From positions 1,364,001 to 1,428,000 of the forward strand of contig JBHGNT010000005.1 in NCBI GenBank assembly GCA_043228905.1: 64,000 nt of DNA, read 5' to 3'. This document shows positions 2,641-52,827 of the stretch, piece after piece. Positions within the stretch are counted from its first letter, which is position 1; each line of letters starts with the position of its first letter. The stretch is from Azolla caroliniana (taxonomy: Eukaryota; Plantae; Polypodiophyta). Both the position numbers and the translations under genes were made by a program. The notes under the pieces were generated by a model. That model saw only the letters and a list, made by a program, of their open reading frames with translations, ran no database searches and was not told the origin of the DNA.

Positions 2641-2825
2641 TTAATCTGTCATCCCGACCGCGCCTTTGGTAAGTAATTTGTGAGTGCCTATGGTCATTTT
2701 GACACCATGTTTTACATCAAGCTCATTCGCATAGACTTAAGTGATGCATTGTAGGGGTTCATTTGTAAGTTTGTAACCCTACCTACCTTCATCTCCTTCA
2801 TATCCCCCACTCAACCCATACTATA

Positions 2826-2828
<3 letters not shown>

Positions 2829-2919
<91 letters not shown>
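2829..2919. repeat. Compound (CT)n(AC)n microsatellite upstream of the DCD gene
   Basis: Seen directly. Confidence 0.95.
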
Positions 2920-2923
<4 letters not shown>

Positions 2924-3255
2924 CTATACATAATATAATCTCTTCCTTCAAACGTTCAGGCTCTGGCCCGTTCTTCGTCTTCTTCATCTGCTTTACCTTG
3001 TGCTGTGTGCTTCTGCCTCTGCTTCGTCTCGTCGTCCAGTGTTCGACACAGACCTGCGATTCTCTGATAAGGATCGGAAACGTCTTCGGAGTTTGCAGAG
3101 ATCTATCCGTTTCCCCCGTGATCCATTCATCTGTCCATTTTCTATCTGTTGTTGTGGAGTACACCCCAAAGGTTATCTTTTTCCGTATTGTCGTTACCCC
3201 CCTACCCTCGACGTCGCAGCGCTGTATCCCCATCCCCGTTTCATCACTTTCAACC

Positions 3256-8481: not shown

Positions 8482-10244
8482 ATGGCTGCCACCGCTACCA
8501 CCTCACTCAGCTCATCCTTCTTGGGACAAGAGCTAACACACAATGTCAAGACATTCAGCAATGGCTCTCGTGTGGTGGCCCTGTTCGGAGGTAAGAAAGC
8601 AGCTCCCAAGAAGGCCCCTGCTGCCTCCAAGAAGAAGAGCTCCAATCCCGACCGCCCTTTATGGTACCCTGGTGTCAAGGCCCCCGAATGGCTTGATGGC
8701 TCCCTAGTCGGTGACTACGGCTTCGACCCCCTCTCCCTCTCCAAACCGGCCGAATACCTCCAATTCGACTTCGACTCGTTGAACCAGAACCTCGCCAAGA
8801 ATGAGGTTGGCCAAGTCATTGGTACCCGGATCGACAGCACTACCGAGATCAAGGCCACACCCTTCCAACCTTATGGTGAGGTGTTCGGCATCCAGAGGTT
8901 CCGAGAGTGCGAGCTCATCCATGGCCGCTGGGCTATGCTCGCCATCCTCGGTGCCCTGTCCGTAGAAGCCTTCACAGGAGTCACATGGCAAGATGCTGGC
9001 AAGGTAGGACTCCTGATCTTGCTTTAAATATTGGTTTTCCATAAATTCTTACATCTGGAGGACCAGGCAGTAGGTTTATTATTGGGAATTTTCTGGATCT
9101 TAGTTAGCAAAATCCAATGTATTTTGTCTGGATCATGTTTTGGGTTCTAGATCTTACCTAGTAAGAATGAATGAATGCATCATACCAGATCATGTTACTG
9201 GTTCTATATCTTTAGTTAGCACGAAACAATGCTTTGTTTGGGTTCTAGAACTTTAGTTAGCAAGAAACAATGCTTTGTTTGGATTCTATATCTTTAGTTA
9301 GCAAGAAACAATGCTTTGTTTGAGTTCTAGATCTTAGTCAGCATGAATGAATGCATGGTCATTATCTAGATCATGACCATAAAATGCAGCATTGCATTTA
9401 GAATATCTTGTGTTGTTTTTAGAGTTCTATATATCTGGTTTCATTTTTCACCATAAAATGCAGCATTGCATTTAGAGTATCTTGTGTTGTTTTTAGAGTT
9501 CTATATATTAATTAGTAGCATCAAATGCCACATAAATTTGATGCACTTGCTCAGCTAGTAAAGAGATTCAGGAAGAAACCGATGCTTCAGTTCCACCAAT
9601 CTATGTATGCACACTAGGGGTAGGGGACATTGGTTAATGAACAAAAGGCACAAGTAGTTGAAACGTTTTATTGAGAGTGACTTAGAACACATACATGTCT
9701 AATCTAGTTTCAAAGTGATTTGTTGTTAAATTCATTCCCCATCCTTTGGTAAATTCATTCACGATTCTATCCCAATTCTCTCCATTGTGCATATCATGGG
9801 TTAACAAGTTGAATGTGAACTAGAGTTTGAGCTCTTAGTATCTTGTTATCTTGTCCTTTTTTTTGGTCCGTATATAACTAGGTGGAACTTGTCGAGGGTT
9901 CATCCTACTTCGGTTTGCCGCTACCATTCTCCATCTCCACTCTATGCTGGATCGAAGCTCTGATTATTGGTTACATCGAGTTCCAAAGGAATGCGGAGCT
10001 TGACCCTGAAAAGCGCATCTACCCTGGTGGCAAGTACTTTGACCCATTGGGCCTTGCTGCGGACCCAGAGAAGAAAGAATTGTTGAAATTGGCAGAGATC
10101 AAGCACGCGAGGCTCGCTATGGTGGCGGCTTTAGGATTTGCAGTCCAAGCGGCCGCGACAGGAAAAGGTCCCTTGGATAACTGGGCCACCCACTTGAGTG
10201 ACCCCCTCCACACCACCATTATTGACACATTCTCCTCCAAGTGA
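8482..10244 (+). CDS. LHCB4: Chlorophyll a/b-binding protein CP29 (photosystem II minor antenna), 294 aa
   Basis: Exons 8482-9003 and 9882-10244 (AAG|gtagga ... tag|GTG). Transit peptide, DRPLWYPG, the CP29-specific insert [13 protein letters not shown]...[36 protein letters not shown] and the C-terminus [18 protein letters not shown]. Confidence 0.97.
9200..9510. repeat. Intronic tandem repeats (~41-bp unit x3 and a ~57-bp segment x2)
   Basis: ttagttagcaagaaacaatgctttgtttg... three times in 9200-9340; ccataaaatgcagcattgcatttag...ttctatatat at ~9377 and ~9451. Confidence 0.85.
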
Positions 10245-16887: not shown

Positions 16888-19800
16888 TTATCTGCATTCT
16901 CTAAGCAAATACAGTGATGGGCTTGGTAGCTCTGCAGAAGTTGCATATATGAGTTGGTTTGCTTCGCCTCTACCTGGAGTTAGAAGGGAGGGTCCATTCC
17001 ACGGTGACAAATCCACCTAAAACATAACCACAATTCATCCACATTTATATATATACAAAGACACAATAAAAATAGAAGTTATAACACAGAAGATCAGAGT
17101 ATACAAATAAACACATAAAAGAAAAAGAGTTAAAACACATGAAAAACAGAGTATATATATACATATATACATATATAATATAAACGTAAGAAGAGAGTTA
17201 AAACACATAAAAGAACAGACCAAAATACCGTTCCTCTATGTGTTTCAAACTAGTCTTTTCTTATAATGTAAATGGCAGACATACCAGAAGAGATCCCGGG
17301 GAGCATAGAGACATATCACCATATTGCTTCTCATTGGCTACAATTCGGTTCTCTTTTCCATCACTTTCTGTTCCACTATGGAACTCGTGTTCAGCTCGTT
17401 CTTCTCCTTCTTCATCTTCAGCTTTTCCAACCCTACCTGACAATATCTGTTCCGCTTCCATGTATGCTGATGCACTATGCTGACTTAAGTGTTGCATCAA
17501 GCTCAGGGCATCAGCCTCATAGTCTCCTCCACCAAAAGGACTTGGCAAGTCCTGTGATATTAGAATGAGAAACAAAGGAAAAACTTGTTATGGGTTAACT
17601 AAAAGAAATCATCGGCTAAAACATATCTTTCCATACCTCTAGCATAGAGCATATTCCCTCTTGTCTTGCAGCTGACATTGGGGATTTCCAACTGATCAAA
17701 GGTGAACATAATGCCCTATGGTAACAATACACCCACATACACATCTCTCTCTGGCTCAAGAGCAATATCATACATGATATGCAAAATCAATATGGCCAAA
17801 ATAGAAAAACATATACAAATATATATATATATATACATAGAGAGAGAGAGGATTAATAAAAAGAAATATGGGGAATGCCAAAGCAAATGAAAGGTAACAC
17901 ATACATGTTAAGGTTATCTAACTCGGCAATGCAGTTGACCCAATCCTGATTCAAGCCACGCAATGATGTTGACATGGTTGATCTCGACATGAGCAACTGC
18001 AAGTCAACTTTCTCAGAAGATCTTGGGACTACAATTGACAAAGATGACCTGGGTGCACCATTCTTTACATTTTCTTGGACACCATTAAAAGACCCTGGAG
18101 GTCGTAGCTGTTGCTCATTGACATCATGTTCCCCAAGCACGTCCAAATCCTCGGTCTGCAATTCATAAGAAAGGAAGCATATTATACAAGCTTTCTTGTA
18201 GTTCATCTTCAATCACACATTTATCATATTTTGACAACTGAGGATGATAAAAACGTTCTTGAAGTTCTCACACACAATTCCATGGGATTCACACTGGTGA
18301 TACCTTCACATCTTTATCTTGGATATTGTCCCTAGGAACTTGCGCAGTTGGTTCTTTCATCTCAGACTCTGGCCCACCATTGGATACTTCCATATTGCAT
18401 AGTACCCCTGTTCTGGAACTGAAGCAATCCTTGTTGACAGACACTCTACAACGAGGCTTAACCATCACTTGAGCTTTGCTTTTCAAACAATAAGAGGGTG
18501 AAACAAGGGTTGGTCGTTCCCCCAACAGCTGTGATCTAGATGACACCAAAGGTGTGGAAGCGCCATTAATCTTGTCGGAAGATGAGGATTCATGTATAGG
18601 AGGACTGTTTCCTTCCCGAGGTCTCTTCCTCACGATAGACGGTGTACTACCAAAGCTTCTTGCTGCAATCCGAAGCACAGCTTGCGGGCTATTTGCAGTA
18701 CCCTCAGTAGAAGAAGGCGAACTCCATGGACTACTTGAGCAATTCACTTGAGAGAGAAGCATTTGCCGAACGCCAAGAGGACTATATGCTTGTTGGATGT
18801 ATCCACTGCTGATCACATCATAGTTATTGAAAGGAAGGTCCATGTTAGGGAACTTGGGAGGTTCATAGAATAGAGCCTCTGCCTCCATTTGATCTATACA
18901 AGGCATATTCATAGTTGAATTTGCCACCTCTTCATGAATGGGCCATTCCATGGGGTTTTCAGTTTTTTCCTTTACTTCAACATTTTCTAATCCGAGGTAA
19001 ACAATTCTTCTTGAGTAATCGTCCAAGAGTATATCTTGCTCATGTTTAACAGATATCTCTCCTTGCATTATCATTGGATCCTTCAACAAAGGGATGTCCA
19101 TGAGCTGGAGACAATCATCAGCATATGCAGGTAAATCAGACATTTTACTAATTTGGTTTTCCTTCTTCCTAGATTTGCAAAGCCCATGTTCAGGACTTGA
19201 AAAATGGGAAGAAGAAGTAACCGGGGAATATGAATGCACTTGCTCTTTGTGTACATTATTGGCTTGAGTTTTTGCTGATGAACCCGTCGGAGATTCAAGT
19301 TGTGTAGACGACTCTATACAATCTAGATTTATTGAACAAAACTCATCCAATGTCCCTATTAGATCATGATTATGATGATTATGCCCATCTATCTCAGAGT
19401 CCATTGCATTGATATTGGACTCATCTGGGGAAGGCTGGATACATGATGCTGTCTCCATGTATTGGTACTGCTGTTTTACTGGAAAGTTCGTTGACGCTCC
19501 TTCTATCATATGTGTCCATGTATGTAGATGGTTCCCTTGTGAAGCTTCCGAATTCTGAGAATGGAATTGTGCCATTTTGGGGTCATTCACATTTCCTTCT
19601 TCTCTTTCATCTCCCAATGTGTTTCTCACATCAAATCGCTTACTCTGGGTTTGCACGTAGTGGCAAGAGTTTTCTGATTGAGTATGGAAACTCGACTTGG
19701 TCCTTTTAGCTAACTCTTTGTCCAATCCAGAGTACCCTTGGTGCAGAAGCTGTATATTATCTGTAGCAAGATTCAGAGCTTGTATATCCATAGCTTCAAT

Positions 19801-21404
19801 TGCCATTGTGGATCCACCAACAGAACCGTATGAATCAAGTTTCTTCTTAATGGAACTATTCCAGTGGTTTTTAATAGCATTATCTGTCCTGAAGAAAGTA
19901 ACCAGATCCCAGTGTATGTATATCAATCCAAGTAGCATTTTTAAATGACATGTATATTATAGTAAGAATAAACGTAGAACATAGTGGTTTTGATTTTAAA
20001 GGTAAACTCTCGCCACATAATGAAATAGTGATAAATAAGAATGAATTGATGACAGAAAATGGATTACCTTCCAGGAAGAAATTTTGCAATTTCAGCCCAC
20101 CGATTACCATAAATTCTATGAGCTTGGACAAGGGCAAGCTCCTCTTGTTGAGTCCATGCCTCCTTCTTTATGTTTGGGTTGAGATGATTATGCCATCTAT
20201 TCAGTCCACAAATGATTATCACGTGTTAACATTTCTTAATCATCTCAATATCATAGCATAACACTTTATTTTCGTTGAAACAGGGTATAGAGCATTTAAA
20301 TGAAATATTTTGAAAGGGAATAATAGACCTTTCTCTACATTGCTTCCCAATACGACCAGGTAATGATTGTGCGATTACCGACCATTTCTTTGCCCCAAAT
20401 TTACCCACAAGTTCTACAATTCTTTCATCCTCCTGTCAGAATTCCATGGTAAGATAGATGGTCACTATTCTTATACCGATTATAGCCTAACCCAAAAATT
20501 CAATTAGCTCCAAATTGAGTTAGATGATAGTGTATACCTCTTTTGTCCATGGCCCCTTCACAAGATCAGGATTTAAAACCTTTTGCCACCGATGCAAACA
20601 TTGCACATCCGTTCGATCCGTGAAATATTCCGCTGAGGAAACACGTCAATATTTGACATGAAGATATATAACATACAGTAAAAGAGATAATTGGAGATTA
20701 TGGTGTAAGTGTTTTCTTATGATCTTCATTGAACATATACGAAAAAGAAATGTTCATACCAATCTTTTTCCAATTCTTTCCATTATAGCATTGCACTGCT
20801 CTCCGAAGGGTCTCATCCTGATCATAGAAAACTATTAGATGGGGGCAATAGCTCAACAGGTAGATATCCTTGTGATGAAAGTTCTCTTATATGGTTTAAC
20901 AAAACATGGTTCTTCAAATTATGTAATAGTGTTCATATAATGATCTTTATTTTGCATGATTCAAAGAGTGATCACATCATGATTCCCGGTGAAATCATAA
21001 CAGTGAACAATGGAATGATATCACCACATATTGAAATATAGAGAAGTACGATGGAAATACCTCTTCTGGTGTCCATCCACCTTTAGCTGACTTCCTTGTG
21101 GGGCCACCAGTACGACTGCAAAGACATTATTCACATTTTCTATCATCAAGTGGTGCACGTGATTTGAAGAACCAAGTAAAATAACAACAGTCATTATCAA
21201 TCATCAAAGAGCGTAGAATGGTGAATGTATATTCATGCGTGTGTATCTGTATGTAATATGTATATGAGTATGTATGGAGACTTGCCCTTTCACTGGAGGT
21301 AAGCTATGAATAGCACTGTCACTACAGTCTGAGAGAGATGAGCATGATTGATCTGGTCTCTTTTCTTCAGATACACAAGATTTCTTCACATTATTTAGTG
21401 ACAT
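16888..21404 (-). CDS. MYB3R: Three-repeat MYB transcription factor (R1R2R3-MYB), long C-terminal form, ~956 aa
   Basis: Coding exons 21404-21286, 21115-21061, 20817-20760, 20632-20538, 20432-20329, 20196-20068, 19888-18304, 18155-17905, 17715-17637, 17551-17285 and 17016-16888, all phase-consistent. Motifs: GRTGGPTRKSAKGGWTPEED, RTDVQCLHRWQKVLNP, GRIGKQCRERWHNHL, GRTDNAIKNHWNS, LFYEPP, YSPLGVRQM, SPQAVLRIAARSFGSTPSIVRKR, WKSP, DALSLMQHLS, SPSLYLLRECR. Confidence 0.95.
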
Positions 21405-22234: not shown

Positions 22235-22279
<45 letters not shown>

Positions 22280-22284
<5 letters not shown>

Positions 22285-22649
22285 TATTGCCTTTCATTAG
22301 GAAAGAAAAAACACTACCATGACTCTAAGTGACAACAACAACAAAGTAGAGAGTAGTTCTAGGGATCTCAATACTACTACAAACTTAATCCCCACCCTCC
22401 ACACCAATTCAAATGTCGAATATGATGACATGTTGACCTTGTAGAGTTGCATCTTTTCATGCTTGAGAGATTATGTGACTTCTCTAACCTTGTCAATTGC
22501 CACAAAAGAAGTCCTTTTAACGTTATAACATATTTTCTCACCCCAACTTGTGAATCAAAAGTAAAGGCACCCCCGCATATTCCAATTGAACCATCGCCCC
22601 TGATACCCTCAATAACTCTAAAATATTATTGAATAAAGATCGATCGATC

Positions 22650-22650: not shown

Positions 22651-22680
<30 letters not shown>

Positions 22681-22685
<5 letters not shown>

Positions 22686-22735
22686 TTAGCTTACCCTAAT
22701 GGTAAGTCGTTTACACTACTATTAGCACTACATAT
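22681..22735 (+). mobile_element. 5' half of a tRNA-like SINE, cut by the copia LTR
   Basis: cataattagcttaccctaatggtaa...tttacacta...ttagca.tacat matches the reverse complement of ~61186-61235. Confidence 0.6.
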
Positions 22736-23232
22736 TGTTGGAGACAAAGGTCGTCAATGCGGAAGATCTGATAGCATTCGATTGGAGTTGAATACCTGCG
22801 TATGACAGTTTGTAGATCGTGCACCGAGATGGAGAGAGAGAGAGAGAGAGAGGCACAAGAAGACTCTTTATTCCAATAGACAAGAATAATACAACCAACC
22901 TTACAAAAGGGTTACAAGGTCACTATATATAGTGACCGACTTAGGGCAACTACCATTTATGCTAATTACACAAATGGCCCAGACTTGATCTATAGGAAGG
23001 GATAGTGTGAATACGTCCATTATACACTTGTATTCGACACTCCCCCGTAATGGGCGTATACATGGGTTATCTAAGATTACAGGTATAAACCTAGGTTCTC
23101 GGACATATCAGTTTTGTTCGAGTCGGCAGGGTCCGAAGGCAGAAGACCGAACTGGTCGGGTCGGAAGAGTTGAAGCCGATCGTTAAGGAACTGATGCCGG
23201 TTGTCGGAAACCATCCTGCGTTGCGTCCGGCT

Positions 23233-26200
23233 CTAACCGGACTGGTTTGTCGTTACGCCCATCTGATGCCGAAGGGACCGAAAGCGGTCTGCCGAAAGAC
23301 ACTTGGTCATTCCATCTGCGACATTGTCGGTTGTGGATATTTTCTCTAGACCGATTTTCCCTGAAATGACGCAGTCCCGAACGAAGTGATATCGAACGTC
23401 GATATGTTTGGAGGCGTTGTGGTGAACCGGATTTTTCGACAAGGCAACAGTACCTTGACTGTCGATGTAGATAACTGGGACCGAGTTATGGTCGACTTGT
23501 CGAAACGTGTGCGCCAGCCGACCGAGCCATAAAGCTTCTTTTGCAGCGTCGGACGCAGCTACATATTCGGCTTCGGTCGTTGAGGTCGCTGTGCACTCCT
23601 GAAGTTTCGACTTCCACGAGATTGCTCCATTGCCGAATTTGAAGCAGTATCCGGTTGTTGATTTCCGACTGTCTATGCAGCCGGCGAAGTCCGAGTCGGT
23701 GTAACCGACTACGCCTGAGGTTGAGTTCGGACCGAAAAGAATGCCGTGGTCTTTTGTGCCAGCCAGATATTTGAACACATGCTTGACTGCGTTCCAATGC
23801 GATCGGCCAGGATTGTGCATAAATCTGCTAACGACTCCTACGGCATGAGAAATATCAGGCCGTGTCGCGACCATCAGGTACATAAGGGAGCCGACTGCCG
23901 GTGCATACGGTACCGACTTCATATCTTCCCCCTCCGGACCGGATGTAGGGCAGTCTCGCTGAGAGAGCCGAAGATTCATGGGGAGCGGGGTTGAAGCAGA
24001 TTTGGCTGATTGCATGTTGAAGCGTTCCAAGACACGTCCGATATAGTCGGTCTGAGACAAAAAAAGATGTCGTTGATCGCGATGCCGACTAATCTTCATG
24101 CCAAGTATGTGTCGTGCCGGACCGAGGTCCTTCATGGCAAACTTCAACCGCAGTTGCCGAATGAGATCGGCAAGTTCGCCCGCGTGGCGTCCAGAAATTA
24201 GCATGTCGTCCACGTAAATGATGAGGAAGATGGGTGATCCATCTTGAGCTGTGTTGGTAAAAAGACAATGGTCCTCATCGCTTTTTGAGAAGCCGATCGA
24301 TTGGATGAAGTCGTCGAACTTCTTGTACCATTGTCGCGGTGCCTGTTTGAGGCCGTATAGACTCTTCCTGAGTCGGCAGACTAGATGTTCTTGGCCAGTT
24401 GCCACGAAGCCTTTTGGCTGCTCCATATAAATTTCCTCTTCAAGATCACCATGGAGGAATGCTGTTTTGACATCTAGCTGAATCAGCTCTAAGTTGTCGG
24501 CTGCCACTACGCCGAGTAGAAAACGAAGGGTTGTCATTTTCACCACTGGTGAAAAAATCTCGTCGAAGTCGACGCCATATTCTTGTCGGAAGCCCTTCGC
24601 AACTAATCTGGCCTTGTACTTTGGGGTGGTCGAATCAGACGTCTCTTTTAGTCGATAAACCCACTTGCAAGGAAGAGCACGTCGGTTCCTAGGTAATTCG
24701 ACCAGATCCCAAGTCTTGTTTGCCCGAATGGAGTGCATTTCCGACTCCATCGCCAGATGCCAGGTGGCGGAATCGACAGATGTCGATGCTTCTTCGTAAG
24801 ACGTCGGTTCGCCGGCGTCGGTGAAGAAAATTCCAGGAGAATACCTCTCCGGAGGTTGCGACAGTCTCTCGGATCGTCGAGGTATGATTGGACTGGTCGC
24901 ATCGGGTATCGAGTTCGGATGGTCCGAAAGCGGACTATTCTGCTGTGCCGAGTCGGAGTTGTCCGAGTCAGTAGTGTAAGGTTCAGCTACCCGTGAAGCT
25001 GACCGTGTGTTAAGAGCGGGGCCTTCTTGAAGGGTCGGCACATCGGAAAATGTTACCCTTCGGACTTCGATCGGTGTTTCGACTGATGGAGTCATAGCCG
25101 ACTCGTTGAACACAACGTCCGAACTTCGAACGATTTGTCTGCGTTCGGGGTCCCAGAGTCGGTATCCCATTTCGCCGTCTGATCCATATCCAAGGAAAAT
25201 GCATTTCCTGGACCGAGGTGCAAGTTTTTGGCGATCATCTTTCGGAATAAGGGCGTACGCCTCGCATCCGAAGATCCTCAGCTTGTCGTAATTCGGCTTA
25301 CTGCCGATCCATAGTTCCTGAGGAATTTGAAGTCCTAGAGGTCTGCTTGGCGACATATTGATTATGTGTACTGCCGTGAGTAGCGCCTCTGCCCAGAAGC
25401 CATCCGACAGTCCGGAGTGTTGGAGCATGGAAATTATCCGTTCTTGGATTGTCCGATTCATGCGTTCGGCAATCCCGTTTTGCTCCGGACTGTGTGGTGC
25501 CGTAAATTCACGTCGGATGCCGCGTTGTCGGCAGAATTTGACGAATTCTTCTGATTTGAACTCTCCCCCATTGTCTGTCCGAAAGCATTTCAGTTTTCGG
25601 TCGGTTTGATTTTCTACCATAGCGAGCCAATCTGAGAAGATCGAGAAGACCCGATCTTTGGTGCGAATCGGATAAGCCCACACCTTTCGAGTCGAATCGT
25701 CAATAAAAGTGACGAAGTAAGAGGCACCGCCGAGAGACTGATGCGGCATTGGGCCACAGACGTCCGAGTGGACTAAGTCGAGAGGTCTCGTGTCTCTTGG
25801 TGCTGATGTCGGGTGTGTTGCGGCTGCTTGTTTGCCATACTGGCAATGTTCGCAAAATTGATGGTCCGAGAAGGAGAGTTTAGGGATGTATCCGGCTCTA
25901 GATAGATGCGTAATGCCGGCCTTGCTGAGGTGTCCTAATCTTCTGTGCCATAGTGATGACACAGGAATATCCACCAAAAACAGGTTACCCTCTCTGAGCG
26001 TAACATGTAACGGATACAGTGAGTGTATCTTGGGTCCTCTGGCAAGCAGGAGGTTCCCCCTGTGGAGTGTCCACCCTCCCGAAGAGAAACCGGCACGAAT
26101 GCCGTCTTCATCTAGTTGTCCGACTGAGATCAATGGCCTTGAGAGCTCGGGTACATGTCGGACATTGTGAAGTACAAGTGTAGAGCCACCTGTAAGGTTG

Positions 26201-27591
26201 AGCTCTACTGTGCCGATTCCAATGATGTCATAGTGTTGCGAGTTGCCGACTCGAACTGAGTCGGAGTGACGGATCGTATATTGCCGAAATTGGGATCGAT
26301 GAGGAGTCATGTGAAATGACGCGCCCGAATCTAAGAGCCATGTGCTCGATTCTTCAGTCGTGAGCAGAACTTCTGATCCGACTGGATTTTCGATTGATAG
26401 TATATTCGGGTCGTTTGGTAGCACATCAGCTGAGAAGCTGACGTAATTGATCTCCTCATGCCGGCCACTCTTCTTGTCTGATTTCTGAGACTTGTCGTTC
26501 TTGTTCTTGAGTGCGCGGCAGTCGGCTTTGATGTGTCCGGGTTTCTTGCAGTAGTTGCAGATTCGGTTATCCCGTGACTGGCTCCGTCTTCGCTGATTGT
26601 TCGGCGGTCGTGAGGAATCTCTTCCTCGTATGTTCGATCGGTCTGTCGAACCTTGTACTACATAAGCGTCGTCTGTTGAGTCTTTGGCGAAAGACTTTCT
26701 CCGAGCTGCTTCGGTCAGGATTGCGCTCGTGACTTCGGAGTATTTGACAGCCGTGGTTGACGCGTTGCACACGGTTGTGACGAAAGTTTCCCATGATGAG
26801 GGAAGGCTACTCATGAGTATCATTGCTCTGAGTTCATCCTCGATTGCCGTCCCCTGAGATGAGATTTGGGAGCTTATGCTTTCGTACTCATTAAGGTGTG
26901 CTTGAACCGAATCAGATTCTTTCATCCGCAAGTTGTAGAGACGCCGGATCAGAAACATCTTCGTTGCGGCGACCTTCTTTTCGANNNNNNNNNNNNNNNN
27001 NNNNNNNNNNNNNNNNNNNNNNNNNNNNNNNNNNNNNNNNNNNNNNNNNNNNNNNNNNNNNNNNNNNNNNNNNNNNNNNNNNNNAGACGCGTTGCACACG
27101 GTTGTGACGAAAGTTTCCCATGATGAGGGAAGGCTACTCATGAGTATCATTGCTCTGAGTTCATCCTCGATTGCCGTCCCCTGAGATGAGATTTGGGAGC
27201 TTATGCTTTCGTACTCATTAAGGTGTGCTTGAACCGAATCAGATTCTTTCATCCGCAAGTTGTAGAGACGCCGGATCAGAAACATCTTCGTTGCGGCGAC
27301 CTTCTTTTCGTAAGTGTCCGACAGTGTTTTCCACAGTTCGAATGCTGTCGTACACGATTGCACCGTAAAATATACCGATTCCGATAGGTGCATCCGAATC
27401 GTGGCGCGGACGATTCTGTCCAGCTTCTGCCACTCAATTGGTTTGTATCCTTCTGGAGGTTCTTCATTTTCGATGGGATCGATTTGCCCCTTGACTATGA
27501 GATAGTCCTGCATTTGCTCCTTCCAGAAGTTAAAGTTCGATCCATCGAACTTTCGTAGACTCATTTCTGACGAGCCGGATGTTGATGCCAT
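23233..27591 (-). CDS. Copia Gag-Pol polyprotein (~1343 aa after removing the gap artefact)
   Basis: Zinc knuckle CNYCKKPGHIKADC, protease DSGAS, integrase WHRRLGH...CEHC / HSDVCGP / TDNGGE / QNGIAER, RT LDVKTAFL / YVDD and RNase H YTDSD...SKHIDVRYH. No stop codons. Confidence 0.97.
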   Translation of the reverse strand: MASTSGSSEMSLRKFDGSNFNFWKEQMQDYLIVKGQIDPIENEEPPEGYKPIEWQKLDRIVRATIRMHLSESVYFTVQSCTTAFELWKTLSDTYEKKVAATKMFLIRRLYNLRMKESDSVQAHLNEYESISSQISSQGTAIEDELRAMILMSSLPSSWETFVTTVCNASXXXXXXXXXXXXXXXXXXXXXXXXXXXXXXXXXXEKKVAATKMFLIRRLYNLRMKESDSVQAHLNEYESISSQISSQGTAIEDELRAMILMSSLPSSWETFVTTVCNASTTAVKYSEVTSAILTEAARRKSFAKDSTDDAYVVQGSTDRSNIRGRDSSRPPNNQRRRSQSRDNRICNYCKKPGHIKADCRALKNKNDKSQKSDKKSGRHEEINYVSFSADVLPNDPNILSIENPVGSEVLLTTEESSTWLLDSGASFHMTPHRSQFRQYTIRHSDSVRVGNSQHYDIIGIGTVELNLTGGSTLVLHNVRHVPELSRPLISVGQLDEDGIRAGFSSGGWTLHRGNLLLARGPKIHSLYPLHVTLREGNLFLVDIPVSSLWHRRLGHLSKAGITHLSRAGYIPKLSFSDHQFCEHCQYGKQAAATHPTSAPRDTRPLDLVHSDVCGPMPHQSLGGASYFVTFIDDSTRKVWAYPIRTKDRVFSIFSDWLAMVENQTDRKLKCFRTDNGGEFKSEEFVKFCRQRGIRREFTAPHSPEQNGIAERMNRTIQERIISMLQHSGLSDGFWAEALLTAVHIINMSPSRPLGLQIPQELWIGSKPNYDKLRIFGCEAYALIPKDDRQKLAPRSRKCIFLGYGSDGEMGYRLWDPERRQIVRSSDVVFNESAMTPSVETPIEVRRVTFSDVPTLQEGPALNTRSASRVAEPYTTDSDNSDSAQQNSPLSDHPNSIPDATSPIIPRRSERLSQPPERYSPGIFFTDAGEPTSYEEASTSVDSATWHLAMESEMHSIRANKTWDLVELPRNRRALPCKWVYRLKETSDSTTPKYKARLVAKGFRQEYGVDFDEIFSPVVKMTTLRFLLGVVAADNLELIQLDVKTAFLHGDLEEEIYMEQPKGFVATGQEHLVCRLRKSLYGLKQAPRQWYKKFDDFIQSIGFSKSDEDHCLFTNTAQDGSPIFLIIYVDDMLISGRHAGELADLIRQLRLKFAMKDLGPARHILGMKISRHRDQRHLFLSQTDYIGRVLERFNMQSAKSASTPLPMNLRLSQRDCPTSGPEGEDMKSVPYAPAVGSLMYLMVATRPDISHAVGVVSRFMHNPGRSHWNAVKHVFKYLAGTKDHGILFGPNSTSGVVGYTDSDFAGCIDSRKSTTGYCFKFGNGAISWKSKLQECTATSTTEAEYVAASDAAKEALWLGRLAHTFRQVDHNSVPVIYIDSQGTVALSKNPVHHNASKHIDVRYHFVRDCVISGKIGLEKISTTDNVADGMTKCLSADRFRSLRHQMGVTTNQSG
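26985..27084. other. 100-N scaffold gap with a 225-bp unmerged contig overlap
   Basis: 26759-26983 is repeated at 27086-27310, and each contig end carries one extra non-matching A. Confidence 0.95.
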
Positions 27592-28563
27592 CAGATTCGG
27601 TTTCGGTTGACGAAGCTCGGTTCGGAGTTGACTACGAACCTTGTTGGAGTGCAGCCGGTTGGCTCACCCGATATCGTTCTAGTCGGATTTGAACCCGAGT
27701 CGGTTCGGCTTCGGATATATATATTGTTGAACTTGCTCAAATTGACTCCGGTAACTTGAGGGACAGAACCGACTGGTCTTCCCGAATGTTGCCGAGTCGG
27801 AGTGAGCCCGGTTCGCTTCCGAATATATATGCCAAATGCCGATTATTGAAACCGATTGTCTGGACCGATTCTGCTTCGGGTGACTGCAGCGACGAGAGAG
27901 ACGGATCCAACTGATCCTCCCGAATGTCGATCAGCCGGATGAAGCACGAATTGGGGTTGTTGTCTTGAGACCGATCTGCACCGAGTGGTTACAATGAGCG
28001 GCGAGCAGCGTTTGATGACCTCTTCGGATGTCGTTTAACCGAGTGGAGCACGATCGTGTCAATGTTGCACAAGGGGATTTCACCTCGAGCGGTTACGATC
28101 ACAAGGAACAGAGTACAACCTGCTGGCTTACTCCAAGCGAAGATGATCTAACGCGATGAGATGCAAGCCTCGTTTTTTTTTTCTTCTCTCTTCTTCGAAT
28201 GGCGCAGGAAACCGAATGCTGTGCAGGCTGAGACGACGGCCGACAGCGGGATGAAGGACCGAATACTGTGCAGGCTCTGATACCAGATGTTGGAGACAAA
28301 GGTCGTCAATGCGGAAGATCTGATAGCATTCGATTGGAGTTGAATACCTGCGTATGACAGTTTGTAGATCGTGCACCGAGATGGAGAGAGAGAGAGAGAG
28401 AGAGGCACAAGAAGACTCTTTATTCCAATAGACAAGAATAATACAACCAACCTTACAAAAGGGTTACAAGGTCACTATATATAGTGACCAACTTAGGGCA
28501 ACTACCATTTATGCTAATTACACAAATGGCCCAGACTTGATCTATAGGAAGGGATAGTGTGAA

Positions 28564-31500
28564 TACTGCAAGAAACCCGGACACATCAAAGCCGACTGCC
28601 GCGCACTCAAGAACAAGAACGACAAGTCTCAGAAATCAGACAAGAAGAGTGGCCGGCATGAGGAGATCAATTACGTCAGCTTCTCAGCTGATGTGCTACC
28701 AAACGACCCGAATATACTATCAATCGAAAATCCAGTCGGATCAGAAGTTCTGCTCACGACTGAAGAATCGAGCACATGGCTCTTAGATTCGGGCGCGTCA
28801 TTTCACATGACTCCTCATCGATCCCAATTTCGGCAATATACGATCCGTCACTCCGACTCAGTTCGAGTCGGCAACTCGCAACACTATGACATCATTGGAA
28901 TCGGCACAGTAGAGCTCAACCTTACAGGTGGCTCTACACTTGTACTTCACAATGTCCGACATGTACCCGAGCTCTCAAGGCCATTGATCTCAGTCGGACA
29001 ACTAGATGAAGACGGCATTCGTGCCGGTTTCTCTTCGGGAGGGTGGACACTCCACAGGGGGAACCTCCTGCTTGCCAGAGGACCCAAGATACACTCACTG
29101 TATCCGTTACATGTTACGCTCAGAGAGGGTAACCTGTTTTTGGTGGATATTCCTGTGTCATCACTATGGCACAGAAGATTAGGACACCTCAGCAAGGCCG
29201 GCATTACGCATCTATCTAGAGCCGGATACATCCCTAAACTCTCCTTCTCGGACCATCAATTTTGCGAACATTGCCAGTATGGCAAACAAGCAGCCGCAAC
29301 ACACCCGACATCAGCACCAAGAGACACGAGACCTCTCGACTTAGTCCACTCGGACGTCTGTGGCCCAATGCCGCATCAGTCTCTCGGCGGTGCCTCTTAC
29401 TTCGTCACTTTTATTGACGATTCGACTCGAAAGGTGTGGGCTTATCCGATTCGCACCAAAGATCGGGTCTTCTCGATCTTCTCAGATTGGCTCGCTATGG
29501 TAGAAAATCAAACCGACCGAAAACTGAAATGCTTTCGGACAGACAATGGGGGAGAGTTCAAATCAGAAGAATTCGTCAAATTCTGCCGACAACGCGGCAT
29601 CCGACGTGAATTTACGGCACCACACAGTCCGGAGCAAAACGGGATTGCCGAACGCATGAATCGGACAATCCAAGAACGGATAATTTCCATGCTCCAACAC
29701 TCCGGACTGTCGGATGGCTTCTGGGCAGAGGCGCTACTCACGGCAGTACACATAATCAATATGTCGCCAAGCAGACCTCTAGGACTTCAAATTCCTCAGG
29801 AACTATGGATCGGCAGTAAGCCGAATTACGACAAGCTGAGGATCTTCGGATGCGAGGCGTACGCCCTTATTCCGAAAGATGATCGCCAAAAACTTGCACC
29901 TCGGTCCAGGAAATGCATTTTCCTTGGATATGGATCAGACGGCGAAATGGGATACCGACTCTGGGACCCCGAACGCAGACAAATCGTTCGAAGTTCGGAC
30001 GTTGTGTTCAACGAGTCGGCTATGACTCCATCAGTCGAAACACCGATCGAAGTCCGAAGGGTAACATTTTCCGATGTGCCGACCCTTCAAGAAGGCCCCG
30101 CTCTTAACACACGGTCAGCTTCACGGGTAGCTGAACCTTACACTACTGACTCGGACAACTCCGACTCGGCACAGCAGAATAGTCCGCTTTCGGACCATCC
30201 GAACTCGATACCCGATGCGACCAGTCCAATCATACCTCGACGATCCGAGAGACTGTCGCAACCTCCGGAGAGGTATTCTCCTGGAATTTTCTTCACCGAC
30301 GCCGGCGAACCGACGTCTTACGAAGAAGCATCGACATCTGTCGATTCCGCCACCTGGCATCTGGCGATGGAGTCGGAAATGCACTCCATTCGGGCAAACA
30401 AGACTTGGGATCTGGTCGAATTACCTAGGAACCGACGTGCTCTTCCTTGCAAGTGGGTTTATCGACTAAAAGAGACGTCTGATTCGACCACCCCAAAGTA
30501 CAAGGCCAGATTAGTTGCGAAGGGCTTCCGACAAGAATATGGCGTCGACTTCGACGAGATTTTTTCACCAGTGGTGAAAATGACAACCCTTCGTTTTCTA
30601 CTCGGCGTAGTGGCAGCCGACAACTTAGAGCTGATTCAGCTAGATGTCAAAACAGCATTCCTCCATGGTGATCTTGAAGAGGAAATTTATATGGAGCAGC
30701 CAAAAGGCTTCGTGGCAACTGGCCAAGAACATCTAGTCTGCCGACTCAGGAAGAGTCTATACGGCCTCAAACAGGCACCGCGACAATGGTACAAGAAGTT
30801 CGACGACTTCATCCAATCGATCGGCTTCTCAAAAAGCGATGAGGACCATTGTCTTTTTACCAACACAGCTCAAGATGGATCACCCATCTTCCTCATCATT
30901 TACGTGGACGACATGCTAATTTCTGGACGCCACGCGGGCGAACTTGCCGATCTCATTCGGCAACTGCGGTTGAAGTTTGCCATGAAGGACCTCGGTCCGG
31001 CACGACACATACTTGGCATGAAGATTAGTCGGCATCGCGATCAACGACATCTTTTTTTGTCTCAGACCGACTATATCGGACGTGTCTTGGAACGCTTCAA
31101 CATGCAATCAGCCAAATCTGCTTCAACCCCGCTCCCCATGAATCTTCGGCTCTCTCAGCGAGACTGCCCTACATCCGGTCCGGAGGGGGAAGATATGAAG
31201 TCGGTACCGTATGCACCGGCAGTCGGCTCCCTTATGTACCTGATGGTCGCGACACGGCCTGATATTTCTCATGCCGTAGGAGTCGTTAGCAGATTTATGC
31301 ACAATCCTGGCCGATCGCATTGGAACGCAGTCAAGCATGTGTTCAAATATCTGGCTGGCACAAAAGACCACGGCATTCTTTTCGGTCCGAACTCAACCTC
31401 AGGCGTAGTCGGTTACACCGACTCGGACTTCGCCGGCTGCATAGACAGTCGGAAATCAACAACCGGATACTGCTTCAAATTCGGCAATGGAGCAATCTCG

Positions 31501-32381
31501 TGGAAGTCGAAACTTCAGGAGTGCACAGCGACCTCAACGACCGAAGCCGAATATGTAGCTGCGTCCGACGCTGCAAAAGAAGCTTTATGGCTCGGTCGGC
31601 TGGCGCACACGTTTCGACAAGTCGACCATAACTCGGTCCCAGTTATCTACATCGACAGTCAAGGTACTGTTGCCTTGTCGAAAAATCCGGTTCACCACAA
31701 CGCCTCCAAACATATCGACGTTCGATATCACTTCGTTCGGGACTGCGTCATTTCAGGGAAAATCGGTCTAGAGAAAATATCCACAACCGACAATGTCGCA
31801 GATGGAATGACCAAGTGTCTTTCGGCAGACCGCTTTCGGTCCCTTCGGCATCAGATGGGCGTAACGACAAACCAGTCCGGTTAGAGCCGGACGCAACGCA
31901 GGATGGTTTCCGACAACCGGCATCAGTTCCTTAACGATCGGCTTCAACTCTTCCGACCCGACCAGTTCGGTCTTCTGCCTTCGGACCCTGCCGACTCGAA
32001 CAAAACTGATATGTCCGAGAACCTAGGTTTATACCTGTAATCTTAGATAACCCATGTATACGCCCATTACGGGGGAGTGTCGAATACAAGTGTATAATGG
32101 ACGTATTCACACTATCCCTTCCTATAGATCAAGTCTGGGCCATTTGTGTAATTAGCATAAATGGTAGTTGCCCTAAGTCGGTCACTATATATAGTGACCT
32201 TGTAACCCTTTTGTAAGGTTGGTTGTATTATTCTTGTCTATTGGAATAAAGAGTCTTCTTGTGCCTCTCTCTCTCTCTCTCTCTCCATCTCGGTGCACGA
32301 TCTACAAACTGTCATACGCAGGTATTCAACTCCAATCGAATGCTATCAGATCTTCCGCATTGACGACCTTTGTCTCCAACA
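28564..32381 (+). mobile_element. Ty1/copia copy 2, 5'-truncated (zinc knuckle to 3' LTR), inverted relative to copy 1
   Basis: Reverse complement of 22736-26553: mirrored coordinates sum to 55117 and the translated ORFs are identical. The frame is open 28564-31884 but has no ATG before the protease DSG. PPT 32071-32077; LTR 32078-32381. Confidence 0.97.
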
Positions 32382-35300
32382 CCCACATGATTAACTCCTT
32401 CCGGGTGGCCCCATGCCCTATTGGTGCAGACCATAGCTTCCTATACTTTGAGCTAAAATGTGACACCTCCAACGCCACCAACTCTAATCAACCAAACCAT
32501 CACACCACAATGCTTTCACACATGAGCTCTCTAACATCTACTCCTAACATGTTCAAGCCCATCTCTCCTCTCTTGATTCTTCCTTGCCTTTAGAGAACCT
32601 CACTCCAGAACCACACATCCTTCACTCAGCATCAATTAGTAGCTTCCCATACACGAAACACTCCAATCAAAGTAGAATAGGGTATATGCCACATAATAGG
32701 TGGTATGGTGAGGATTGTAGAGACTTGTATAAACAACTTAAATTGTCGCGACTTAATGGTACTATTTCCTCAGTACAGGCTCACAAAGAGATGCGCAAGA
32801 TGACACGTCGTGAAAGACAAGCTTGGGAAGCATCTCAATATTGGGAACTCCACCACATGCACATGAGTAGGGACTACGCGCTTGCATGGAAGAGACTACG
32901 AACGGAGACCACAAACACCCATCGAGGATCCCAACACTTGACACACATATACAGAGAAACTCTCGCACGTCCCGAACCAACCACCCATTCCAATGCCTTC
33001 CACACCTCGACCTATCACGGGGACACTTTTCACGACCTCTAGGGTCATGAAGGTCATAAAAATATTACAACATAGGAAGTCCATGGACCACACAGGATTA
33101 CGAGCCGAACACATCATATATGCTCGAGAGTGCCTAGCTCCTTTTCTCACTCTAATCTTCAACCGTGCCCTCGCCGAGGGTTTTCCACCTCAACGGACCA
33201 TGAACATAGTGGCCCCTATACATAAAGGAGGGGACCTAATGGACCCAAATACATATAGGACCATTATGATAGGTCATACGCTCGCTAAATTATATGGTGC
33301 AATAATGGAAGCAAAGCTCAGCGATATGGAAACCGTAAGTCTTTGAGCACTTGAGCAAGCTGGCTTTAGACGAGCATTCTCCACTATTGATGCTTAATTG
33401 ACCAGACGAAGGCTCGCAATAAGAAATTATATTGTTGCTTTGTGCAAAGCCTCTTTTGACACAGTTCCTAGGGAGCGATTGTTTGATAGGATTAAAAGCT
33501 TGAAGATACCAAATGACATTATATGGGCCATCTATGCTCTATATGAGCAAGTCTTTGTGTTCGTAAGATGCCTAGATGGCCTATCTGATTGCTTCACCAA
33601 CACCATTGGTGTAAAACAGGGTTGTCCCCTATCCCCGACTCTTTTTGGGATCTACATTGACGAGATCACTTATTTTATTGCTCGTAAGGGAGGCAACGGA
33701 GTAGCCATTAGGGGTACGCAAGTTAGTCTCTTACTCTACGCAGACGACATAGTTTTGCTCTCAGAGTCTGAACACGACCTACAAAAGCACCTTAATGCCC
33801 TAGATGACTTTTCCACACAACGAGGACTGGTATTGAATCTAGCGAAAACTAAAGTCCTTATCTTTCATACATTGTCTCGAGTTAGGAGTAAATGTCACCT
33901 AATCCTCTCTCATAAATCAATTGAGGTAGTTGGATCCTATGTATATCTGGGAGTCACTTTTAGTGCTCGTTCAGGTAAATTCTCGATGATCCAAGCAGCC
34001 AAAGATAGGCTAACGAGAGGGTATGCATCCCTCTCACTCTTAGAGAGACAATGCCACCAAGCATACTTCAAGAGTCACGGACTAAGGGATGGTTCTTCGA
34101 CTCATTGGTGACCCTTTCCCTCATGTATGCATCAGTAGTCTAGGCTCCATGTCTACCATCTTTCATGTGGACGCAATTAGAGAGACCTTTGGTGACGATG
34201 TTATCACTTCAACTCCGAGCAAATCGACAATACCACATGACATTATTAGAGTAGAGTTCAATTTGCCCCCGATATTAGTAGAAGCAATTTTCCAACTGGT
34301 AATTTTTATTCATAGGATACATAGCCAACCGCAAGATAGGTTATCCCGTCAAGCTTGCATCCTGATCCCTATATGCGTCCGGAGATACTAGCTCTTGGTA
34401 TAGCATTGTAGTGAGTTGGTTACTTGCAAATGGCATAGACATTAATAACTTACCTCCCCTCAGCACAACCATGGGACTAATCAAACTTTAATCTCTCATG
34501 AGGACCGTAATAAAGTAATACGCCAAGAAATATGGCAAATTTACACCCGATATAAATGGATCACCCCACGAGAGCCACTCCCATCTAAAATGTTGTACTA
34601 TAAGGAACACTTGATGCACTTCTCTAAGTTAGGTTTTATTACATGACCAAAATATCTAGAGATACATTCTTATCAAATGCACTAAGGGTGGTTATTAGAC
34701 AACTTAAGATATCATCTCACCAACTTGAGATTGAGAATGGTCGTGCTAATAGAGTCACATAGAGATAGAGGATGAGTATCACGTTACATGCAAGTGTCCA
34801 ACTTATGCCGAGATAAGGGCGGAATACCAAGACATATTAGGACCCTCTCCAAACTATTAGATACACCGGATATAAAGAGACTAGGTAGGTATGTCTTAGA
34901 GCTAAAACAACATAAGGAGAATAAACTACAAAGTGTTAACCATAACCTTTTTAATATTCACCAACATGTAGCTTATGTAATTTTTCAGGAACAAGGGGAG
35001 ACAATGAATGTAGACACACCGACACCACTCGGCCTCTCTCTTGATGAATCAGAAATGCAAAGAACAACCAGATGCCCTCGGATGTCGGGCTTCAAAGCAA
35101 CTCGACGTGGAGTAGAAACAATTAAGAAGATAAGGGAACGTGAGCTACGCCTCCTAGAAGCTATGGTTGGGGTACCTTTTACATTGGGACCATGGCCACA
35201 CCACATCGAAACCCTTTGACCTCCCGCTTCTTTTCGAGAGACTTTGATGGAAATGAAACTAGGCCTAGTAGAAAGCCATCGAACATGTTTTTTACTAGAA

Positions 35301-35445
35301 CTCTTTAGCTTAAGTTCTATTTTTATTTTTATTTACTTTCGATAAATGGGTAAATACCCCATTTTTGTTGTAAACCAATTGTCTCATGGGCCAATTTTGG
35401 TCTTAGAAGACATTAATATATCTTCCTCTCTCTCTTTTTCTTTTT
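32382..35445 (+). mobile_element. Decayed non-LTR retrotransposon, RTE/RTEX-like, 5' part missing
   Basis: End of the endonuclease (PIGADHSFLYF), PIHKGGD..DPNTYRTI, RT motifs GVKQGCPLSPTLF / LLYADD / YVYLG, and C-terminal ISSHQLEIENGR...EDEYH...KCP. Several frameshifts; ends at a short (CT)n. Confidence 0.8.
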
Positions 35446-35459
35446 CTTTTCGAAAATAA

Positions 35460-37540
35460 TGGCTTTCATTATGAAAGAAAAAACACCGCCATGACTAATT
35501 TACTACAAAGTATAGAACCCTTCTATCTAGGGATTTAAAGAATACTATGACACCAAACTCAATGCCACCCTACACACCAATTCAAATGGCGAATATGATG
35601 ATATGTGACCTTACAGAGTTCTCTCTCTTCCTAGTTGAGATTTCGTGACTTCTCTAGCACCGGCAATTGCCACAAAAGAAGTCCTTTTAACTTTAGAACA
35701 TATTTTCTCACCCCAACTTGCGAATAAAAAATGAAGGCATTGTGCATATTCCAATTGAACCATAGCCCCCAATACCTCAAGAACTCAAAAATAATGTGAA
35801 AATGAGGCATTGGTTTATTGTTCTCCATATGTGCAAAAACCCAACTAAAGGAAGTTACACTTACTCCTGTTAGAGACATCCACACTAAACTGATACAACT
35901 CCAAACCATCCTTGCCATCGGGCATGAAATAAATCGATGCCTACTATGTTCCAATTGCACAGAACAAAAGAAACACAATCCTTTAGTAATGTTTCCTTTT
36001 TTTAATGCATCCCCTAATGGTAAAGCTCTAAGAATAACTCTCCAAATAAATACATTGGCTCATAGCATCAATCGAGAACACCAACTTGCCTTGATCACAT
36101 GAAGCCACCAAGTAATGGGCTTATAAAAACCCCATATCTTTATAACCCTTTCTTCCAACCACTTATGTTTGTCAATCAACTCGTGATAAGCAACATTCAT
36201 TGAGATCATAGTTAATCTCTTATTTCTAACAAACCTTCAATCAAGCTCATACGAAGATAGTATTTGTTGCGACTTATACCAAATAAAGTTATAACCTTTT
36301 GGAATACGAAAGGTTGATCTTATTGTTCGAAAAGCCATTAATCTTCTTTGTGAAACCAACATAGCATCCTTAACTGTTACCAAACCCAATCTAGCCATCT
36401 GATTAAATTGAAGGTTAAGAATTTGTTTACCTTCCCACCTCAACAACCTTGATGTTGCCAAAACCTCCATTTGTAATGAATTGGCACATCCCCTTTCTTG
36501 TGGGGGATGCCATTCCCCAAAATCCAACATGCTTTGCCAAGATCTCAACAAATGATTAACTATCATAGACCCTACACATAGACCAAAAAATAAATCGATT
36601 GAAAGTAAATCGACGAGCCACCATATGCTCATATAGATTCAATAGGGATGCCCCACCAAGACGCTTCAGAGTACAAACATGATCCCATGGCAACCACGAC
36701 AAAGCACTTTTCCCTTTTCTTTTCCATAACAACATTCACATCGAGCGTAACATTTCAAGAGCTTTCTTTGACCATGGGAGCAAAGGAAGATAATAAGATA
36801 CCATAGAGACCATAATCGATTGGACCACCGTAAGTCGTACATGAAAAGGCCAAATTTGAGACCTCCAATATATGAACTTTTCCTCCAACCTTTTGGATAC
36901 CCCCACTCAATAAGTTTCACATGAGAAACTTCCACCCCAATTGGATATCCAAGGTGACGACAAATCATACCACGATGGACTATCCTTCCTGACCACCCCA
37001 ACCCTAACATATCTTGTTCTGTACATGAAATGAGGACAGATTTATGTATATTAATTCTCAACCCCAAAGCATTTGAAAACAATTCCCACACATCTCTTGT
37101 CTTACTAATATTTTCCCGATTAGCTGCCAAAAACATAATATGGTCATCTGCGAGAGCTTGAACAATACATGGCTTCCTTGATGGTAACCTTAGTCCAAGC
37201 AAGTCTTCCTCCATAGCCATATTGTGTAACTTAACAAGAATAGGATGTGTCACAATAGTGAATAGTAGTAAAGGACTTACCGGGCATCCTTGTCTAACTG
37301 ACCTCCGAATAGAAATCGGTTGTGTTACTGCTCCATTAAACATCACATGTGAAACCGAACTCTCCCCTAATGTGTATATCAACTTAGACATACGATCACC
37401 AAAACCCATATGAGACATCAATTGATTTATAAATGACCAATCCACATTATCATAGGCTTTCTCGATATCCAATTGTAGCAACACTAATTCTTGTTTAGAC
37501 TCCTTTGTATAGTCAATTGCCATGTGAAAGTTGCTAAGGA

Positions 37541-51526: not shown

Positions 51527-51945
51527 ATGCATTTAGGATGCTCAGACCAATAGTGAAAATGGAATCTCAAAACTCTCTCCCATGTGCAACTAACAATTTT
51601 CTTGTTGAAATTTAATGGTTTATACGTGGTGGAAAAGATTAGGTTGATTTTCTTTGTAAGATCCAATAATACATATCCATATTTCATCATGCTCGTTAAT
51701 TGATGATGCATTTAGGATGCTCAGACCAATAGTGAAAGTGTAATCTCAAAACTCTCTCCCATGTGCAACTAACAATTTTCTTGTTGAAATTTTATGGTTT
51801 ATATGTGGTGGAAAAGATTAGGTTGATTTTCTTTGTAAGATCCAATAGTACATATCCATATTTGACAATGTAATATGATAGGAAGGGTTGTAAGATTTAA
51901 TAATACATATCCATATTTGACAATGTAATATGATAGGAAGGGTTG
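51527..51945. repeat. Local tandem duplications (179-bp period x2, then a ~42-bp segment x2)
   Basis: atgcatttaggatgctcagaccaatagtg... at 51527 and 51706; tacatatccatatttgacaatgtaatatgataggaagggttg twice. Confidence 0.9.
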
Positions 51946-52827
51946 GTTTCATGGGCTTAATACAATTTAAAGGAATAATAGCCACTCTCCCACTTCCATT
52001 TAAAAATTTAGCCTTCATGCTTATAATCTTTACTTGTTTTGGAGCTTATATCCTACATGAATGGTGCAAGCATTAAAAATATATTGCATGCAAAGAGTTG
52101 CATATTCAAACAATGCAAATATTTGCGAATATGATAATTAGTTATTTGGTAGTTATTTGTGTTTAGTTTTGTTATTGTTGTCCTTTACATTGCGTGCTAT
52201 TGGAAAATATTCGATGTATGAGATCAACGAAGCTATATTCTCTTGAAGATGTTAGCATGCTGATTCTTGTGGATTCATACACGTGTTTATGTCTATTCTT
52301 TGTTATGCTTTGAATGATTCCCTAAACGCATATTGATACTTGTACTTCATTTGATTTCTTTTGCAATCCTAGGGTTTTGGGGGATCAACCAAACTCTCAT
52401 TGAGCCCAAAACTTATCTAGAAGAATCCTTTCCATGCTTTGGCTAATTTTTGGAAAGACAAATATAAGATGGCCTTGATTCACGGTTCCGTCTTAACTCT
52501 ATGGATGTCAATTCATTCCAATTAGTTTTCAAAGCACTCTATTTTAGAGATTTATATGATATACAAAATATGATATTATGATCACAATGCACATTCACTT
52601 CTATGATTTAGTATTGTTCATGAAAGCTCGAATTCTAATTATTTCTAAAAAATGATACCAAATTATGTGTTTGTTTTCGACAACGGATCATAAGTACATG
52701 GTATCATTATGTAATAAAATACAAAGTATGCAATGAAAAAAGTTAATTCATCTCATCATGTCTCCATCCCAAAACCACAACAGGTATAACTGAAAAAATG
52801 TTTTATTTTATCTCCACATCAATTGTA

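Follow-up and report, generated by a model that had tools for sequence, protein, structure and literature searches.

Two copies of a copia element, head to head as assembled

The DNA analyzed here is a 64,000-nt stretch from the fern Azolla caroliniana (assembly GCA_043228905.1, contig JBHGNT010000005.1, positions 1,364,001 to 1,428,000; this whole stretch is referred to as the window), and as assembled it holds, between positions 22736 and 32381, two copies of one long terminal repeat (LTR) retrotransposon in head-to-head orientation. By a repeat search and direct string comparison, the copies share two arms of 3818 nt (22736–26553 and 28564–32381) that are 100% reverse-complementary, contain no indels and lie 2010 nt apart; direct string comparison also shows that the complementarity breaks off sharply at all four arm ends. 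The left arm belongs to a minus-strand copy, C1, and the right arm is a plus-strand copy, C2. Two further pairs of matching LTR segments, one inverted (28288–28566 and 32103–32381) and one direct (22736–23014 and 28288–28566), bring the number of LTR copies to three. The spacer between the arms contains the N-terminal part of gag, the primer-binding site (PBS) and a 5' LTR of 279 nt; no further copies of the element are present elsewhere in the window. The features of the locus, with the evidence by which each was identified, are as follows.

22731–22735, no strand: left host flank CATAT, within short dispersed repeats of the tail of a long interspersed nuclear element (LINE) (sequence comparison)
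22736–26553, minus strand: arm 1, the 3' part of C1, 3818 nt, element nt 1712–5529, in the left contig, 100% reverse complement of arm 2
22736–23039, minus strand: 3' LTR of C1, 304 nt, with TG...CA ends, TATA at nt 109 and AATAAA at nt 168 (LTR comparison)
23040–23046, minus strand: polypurine tract (PPT) GGGGGAG, directly 5' of the 3' LTR (read from the sequence; the same in C2 at 32071–32077, plus strand)
23233–27591, minus strand: gag-pol open reading frame (ORF) of C1, listed as 1452 amino acids (aa) including 109 artefactual codons from the gap and a duplicated overlap, in reality 1343 aa (ORF list, translation, Pfam)
26759–27310, no strand: scaffold join, a gap of 100 N (26985–27084) between identical 225-nt contig ends at 26759–26983 and 27086–27310 (repeat and string comparison, translations)
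28274–28285, minus strand: PBS TGGTATCAGAGC, of the initiator tRNA-Met (tRNA-iMet) type, 2 nt past the LTR end, the sole copy in the window (sequence search)
28288–28566, minus strand: 5' LTR of C1, 279 of 304 nt, lacking the outer 25–28 nt of U3 (LTR comparison)
28564–28566, no strand: abnormal joint (28563/28564) of antisense LTR nt 26 to sense gag at element nt 1712, with 3-nt microhomology TAC (string comparison)
28564–32381, plus strand: arm 2, which is copy C2, 5'-truncated, from the gag CCHC zinc knuckle to the 3' LTR tip (repeat comparison, Pfam)
32078–32381, plus strand: 3' LTR of C2, 304 nt, identical to the 3' LTR of C1 (LTR comparison)
32382–32386, no strand: right host flank CCCAC, not a duplicate of the left flank, beyond which lies a decayed RVT_1 (LINE-like) element (sequence comparison)

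C1 runs on the minus strand from 28566 to 22736 in the order 5' LTR, 2 nt, PBS, leader, gag start codon at 27591, stop codon at 23233, PPT and 3' LTR. The coding stretches of both copies are free of stop codons. Pfam domains matched above the cut-offs are Retrotran_gag_2, Pol_BBD, gag_pre-integrs, rve (398–499), SH3_retrovirus and RVT_2 (755–1000), with the integrase preceding the reverse transcriptase, and C1 also has a barrel of the protease region. By its copia-type gag, the integrase upstream of RVT_2, the TG...CA ends of the LTRs, the PBS and the PPT, the element is classed as a Ty1/copia LTR retrotransposon. Among proteins elsewhere, its best relatives are copia polyproteins of plants, which reach 57% identity at most; four exact protein look-ups returned no entry in the collection searched, and a 30-mer from the LTR and PBS was absent from the metagenome contigs searched. 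Between the PBS and the gag ATG, the leader (27592–28273, minus strand) measures 696 nt, which is unusually long; GC-rich motifs recur in it, and a short run of TA comes after each of them.

Only the two 3' LTRs contain LTR nt 1–25, and the 5' LTR of C1, with its outer edge missing, keeps the promoter. C1 is nearly complete, with promoter, PBS, intact gag-pol, PPT and 3' LTR, and is probably still open to transcription. A single position (28490) distinguishes the 5' LTR from both 3' LTRs: on the sense strand, shortly before the TATA box, CG has become TG. C2 starts in frame at codon 238, a position within the gag zinc knuckle, and extends as far as its 3' LTR tip at 32381; its coding stretch of 1106 aa includes Pol_BBD, gag_pre-integrs, rve, SH3_retrovirus and RVT_2. 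By their coordinates, the spacer and arm 2 together amount to exactly one element (nt 26–5529), with nothing lost or duplicated. Taken by itself, the right contig therefore fits just as well a single element in which the 5' 1.7 kb is inverted, in which case the left contig would have been attached in error.

A first-pass annotation of the window had described arms of 3818 bp that are reverse complements without indels, a spacer of ~2.0 kb (~1.7 kb without a gap artefact), and a young, intact copia element with three LTRs, of which the 5' LTR is truncated. The repeat search and the string comparison agree with the first of these statements, the measured spacer lengths with the second, and the anatomy of the element with the third. 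One correction concerns the LTRs, in that the 5' LTR is not fully identical to the 3' LTRs and differs from them at one base (22938 G versus 28490 A).

The long repeat is conditional on a scaffold join

The 100-N gap between the two contig ends is the single run of N in the window. The two bases that adjoin the gap, 26984 and 27085, each mismatch the other copy of the 225-nt segment. The offset between the two 225-nt copies is 327 nt, that is, 3 × 109, and the minus-strand ORF 23233–27591 stays in frame; both copies are translated into the same 75 residues in one frame, and the Pfam profile Retrotran_gag_2 is matched at 8–146 to the right of the gap and at 75–168 to its left. Continuity across the gap was judged by the coordinates, by separate translations of the two sides and by the positions matched in the Pfam profile, and the two sequences were kept unmerged. 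Because the 225 nt are identical, the frame is kept and the gag profile is covered, the contig ends overlap and nothing has been lost between them, provided that both contigs belong together. The earlier suggestion that the gap is an artefact is borne out by these identical, in-frame contig ends, and once the artefact is discounted the spacer measures 1683 nt and gag-pol 1343 aa.

The left contig, which extends to 26984, consists of host flank and ordinary element sequence from nt 5529 down to nt 1281 and has no abnormal feature. The right contig, which begins at 27085, carries the element in antisense from nt 1507 to nt 26, then the abnormal joint, and then the element in sense from nt 1712 to its end; the region to the left of element nt 1711 is never shown in this contig, and the side of arm 1 is not reached. 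Because the left contig is ordinary and the only abnormal joint lies in the right contig, the long repeat depends wholly on the join, and we conclude that the 3.8-kb inverted repeat is real only on condition that the scaffold join is correct.

The joint itself lies 1.48 kb inside the right contig from its start. Because the sides that it connects share an overlap of only 3 nt, it did not arise by a misjoin in the assembler graph, and because these sides lie 1.7 kb apart in the element and are not mirror images of each other, it is not a single-read fold-back. It is therefore unlikely that the joint is a product of the assembly.

Outer ends, host flanks and age

On each outer side the repeat stops precisely at the tip of an LTR (U5), and the two outer LTRs are 100% identical. 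The exact U5 tips imply that each outer end derives from reverse-transcribed DNA and not from a chromosomal duplication. A 5-bp target-site duplication (TSD) common to both flanks was not found (CATAT versus CCCAC), in a comparison that presupposes a correct scaffold join; given this lack of a common TSD, integrase would not have inserted the pair as a single concerted event. The 5' ends of C1 and C2, where TSDs of the single copies would lie, are both lost.

Three other explanations of the boundaries were ruled out. A chromosomal fold-back (inverted segmental) duplication does not agree with complementarity that halts at the LTR tips and with flanks that are not mirrored. Nested insertion of one copy into the other would not leave a left flank made of host repeat instead of gag, nor a right flank that is not the missing 25 nt of the LTR. 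The flanks are also not the LTRs of an older enclosing element: the repeat of ~380 nt that is found on both sides follows a (CT)n run and, with a weak hint of zf-RVT, represents the 3' tail of a LINE.

This dispersed ~380-nt repeat occurs at 22246–22625 and 35421–35793 (78% identity), after a (CT)n run in both places. Beyond the right copy, the minus strand goes on to a weak match to zf-RVT and to an RVT_1 ORF at 36666–37523; because of this continuation we regard the repeat as a LINE 3' tail with a microsatellite end. To the right of the copia pair two decayed RVT_1 elements stand tail to tail (33398–34111, plus strand, and 36666–37523, minus strand), between which neither tblastx nor blastn found similarity. 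A 75-nt piece at 22660–22733 recurs in inverted orientation at 61186–61257; the continuation of the left repeat that this paralogue predicts is found nowhere in the window, a result that tells nothing about whether the two flanks were once adjacent.

As for age, the arms match each other at all 3818 nt, and the 279-nt LTR pair shows one difference. If equal age is assumed, arithmetic from the string comparison gives a chance of ~3.5–7% that the sole change would fall in the LTR. The age pattern does not discriminate between the models of origin considered below.

Origin of the arrangement and its possible role

Our favored reading, to which we assign a probability of roughly 0.55, is that the head-to-head pair of C1 and C2 truly exists and arose by accident, as a rearrangement within a very young Ty1/copia family; in this reading the locus would have no selected function. 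The structure is probably real and of a known sort, namely rearranged or inverted copies of an LTR retrotransposon. Its origin would have been in two steps or otherwise non-concerted. A partial complementary DNA (cDNA), or a second nearby copy of the family, may have been attached by end joining, by way of the 3-nt microhomology, where the other copy had a break at the tip of its 5' LTR, with loss of the intervening host DNA; alternatively, a template switch during reverse transcription may have been followed by capture without integrase. In favor of the join, the 225-nt overlap is perfect, with the correct orientation and frame, and the window contains no further copies; moreover, that the lone gap in 64 kb lies in the spacer suggests that the structure itself caused the assembly to break there. 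Other observations weigh against a real rearrangement of this kind. The 3.8-kb repeat hangs entirely on the scaffold join, with an ordinary left contig and a joint close to the start of the right one; both contigs end within the element; and the absent TSD and non-contiguous host flanks are equally expected from a misjoin of two loci. To a mild degree, a change that is present only in the short LTR also fits collapse or polishing during assembly, gene conversion, or a second arm that was added later.

The rival that we take most seriously, while considering it unlikely, is a scaffold misjoin, in which the left contig is an ordinary full-length copy from elsewhere (or from nearby, with unassembled DNA between) and the right contig holds one element only, with its 5' segment (nt 26–1711) inverted in place, so that the locus would have no 3.8-kb repeat and only an inverted pair of 279-nt LTRs. 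This would explain why the spacer and arm 2 add up to exactly one element, why the right contig starts at nt 1507 and shows nothing beyond nt 1711 next to a normal left contig, why the unrelated host flanks share no TSD, and why both contigs end within the element, as a multi-copy repeat that stopped the assembler would have it. However, where the contig ends overlap, orientation, position and frame all agree perfectly, there is no second copy of the family in the window, and the scenario requires both a scaffolding error and an inversion with one break just 25 nt from the tip of the element. Less probable again is that the joint is a sequencing or assembly chimera at a contig end in a genome that has ordinary copies only. 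Single chimeric reads can persist into the consensus at contig ends, and the joint lies 1.48 kb from such an end, beside the only gap of the window; yet both of its sides come from one family, which random ligation would hardly achieve unless the family were very abundant, its asymmetry does not agree with a missed adapter or a fold-back read of template and complement, and the 3-nt overlap is too short for a graph misjoin. A one-step origin, in which a near-finished minus-strand cDNA snaps back or switches template onto itself and the composite with two U5 ends is integrated as a unit, appears very improbable. It would account for the plus strand of the window, which could be read as minus-strand DNA from U5 to 25 nt short of its end followed by a self-copy that leads from gag nt 1712 back to the 5' end of the same strand, and it suits the exact U5 tips on both sides, the break near the end of the template and a microhomology of 3 nt such as a jump of reverse transcriptase would use. 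Against this, the predicted 5-bp TSD is absent and the host flanks are not contiguous, an argument that is itself conditional on the scaffold join because with a wrong join the left flank seen is not the true one; the arms and the LTR pair would also share one age, but the only change lies in the short LTR.

Separate from origin is the question of whether the arrangement could act on its own family. The first-pass annotation had proposed that transcription of the repeat yields a long hairpin RNA and small interfering RNAs (siRNAs) that silence the copia family in trans in the manner of Mu killer. Long inverted repeats of transposons are a source of siRNAs in the case of Mu killer, and an EVD insertion nested in antisense has been suggested as another (PMC11624286). 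Provided that the join is correct, an element that is apparently autonomous has its LTR, its pol and some of its gag within a perfect 3.8-kb repeat, and the single LTR change is of the kind expected at a methylated site (n = 1). However, the repeat is conditional on the scaffold join, and the orientation of the LTRs and the positions of TATA and AATAAA provide no LTR promoter that reads through both arms. The only LTR promoter that points inward, in the 5' LTR of C1 (TATA at nt 109), reads arm 1 in sense and away from arm 2, and its transcription should give normal genomic RNA; both 3' LTRs fire outward, and a minus-strand transcript that entered from the right would reach the AATAAA of the 5' LTR before arm 1. 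Because no LTR promoter spans both arms, a hairpin RNA would need plus-strand read-through from an outside promoter in the left flank. We therefore regard a silencer role as structurally possible, somewhat disfavored by the geometry of the promoters and, on our analysis, improbable. The boldest combination, a one-step snap-back cDNA that is also read through into a 3.8-kb hairpin whose siRNAs silence its own autonomous family, would be the first LTR-retrotransposon counterpart of Mu killer, in a fern, and we give it very little credence.

Comparison with known rearranged elements

Twin priming gives rise to 5'-inverted LINE-1 insertions and is a feature of target-primed reverse transcription in LINEs, whereas the cDNA of LTR elements is synthesized in particles. 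The single right-contig element that a scaffold misjoin would leave behind, with an inverted 5' segment and microhomology at its joints, has the same outcome as a 5'-inverted LINE-1, but the mechanism of twin priming cannot apply to an LTR element.

Closer in kind are the 'complex' copia insertions with three LTRs that are formed by template switching in cereals, for which the presence of a TSD separates a one-step from a two-step origin (Sabot and Schulman 2007, PMC1950507). As in those complexes, the locus described here has three LTRs and two internal regions that come from one family, and its outer LTRs are identical. The cereal complexes are direct tandems with a common middle LTR and a 5-bp TSD, whereas the Azolla pair is inverted, with a truncated middle LTR and no TSD. 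By the criterion of PMC1950507, the missing TSD favors separate events over a single integration of a composite cDNA.

For silencing loci two comparisons are relevant. Mu killer of maize, as summarized in passages of PMC11624286 and PMC3440606 that cite Slotkin et al. 2005, was reported to produce siRNAs and heritable silencing, and the abstract of PMC3440606 attributes its transcription to presumed read-through from a neighboring gene. Like Mu killer, the copia pair would, if the join is right, be an inverted duplication of part of an autonomous transposon, comprising a terminal repeat and coding sequence, from which a hairpin of several kb is possible in principle; in contrast to the maize locus, a derivative of the DNA transposon MuDR, it involves an LTR retrotransposon, and its arms lie in different contigs joined across a gap. 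The second comparison is with the antisense nested insertion of EVD (ATCOPIA93) in Arabidopsis, where likewise two opposite copies of one active copia family occupy one locus. That insertion has been discussed, as an idea only, as a locus from which LTR hairpins might arise and set off transcriptional silencing (PMC11624286). EVD represents clean nesting of a full copy, unlike the present pair, in which C2 is truncated in gag, C1 lacks an LTR tip and the joint is non-homologous.

Genomic surroundings

The surroundings of the copia pair are gene-rich and include an intronless cytochrome P450 ORF (13322–14821, minus strand), a MORN-repeat ORF (47906–49099, plus strand), a DCD-domain ORF (2998–4065, plus strand) and a chlorophyll a/b-binding fragment (8482–9027, plus strand). 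The pair thus lies in a euchromatin-like context. An ORF of 549 aa (18289–20408, minus strand) has no Pfam match and resembles clusters of plant MYB proteins in the ESM Atlas (score 0.95), and a short ORF just upstream (20229–20408) has a Myb DNA-binding domain (E 1.4e-06); this region, 18289–20408, is probably a multi-exon MYB-type gene. The 3' LTR of C1, placed ~2 kb upstream, has the same direction of firing as this region, and LTR read-out or spreading methylation could affect the MYB-type gene. The window further contains a tandem array at 52781–53194, composed of ~6 units of 69 nt with 79–96% identity, and a tandem duplication at 51527–51945 with a period of 179 nt.

Significance for the silencing of copia families

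How silencing of a newly active LTR retrotransposon sets in is still debated (PMC11624286). Naturally occurring inverted copies are one of the proposed triggers, and few concrete loci are known. If the join proves to be wrong, the locus would be a warning against reading perfect kilobase palindromes across scaffold gaps as biology. If the structure is confirmed, it would offer a clean test case, in which an apparently autonomous copia element is fused to its own inverted copy in a gene-rich region.

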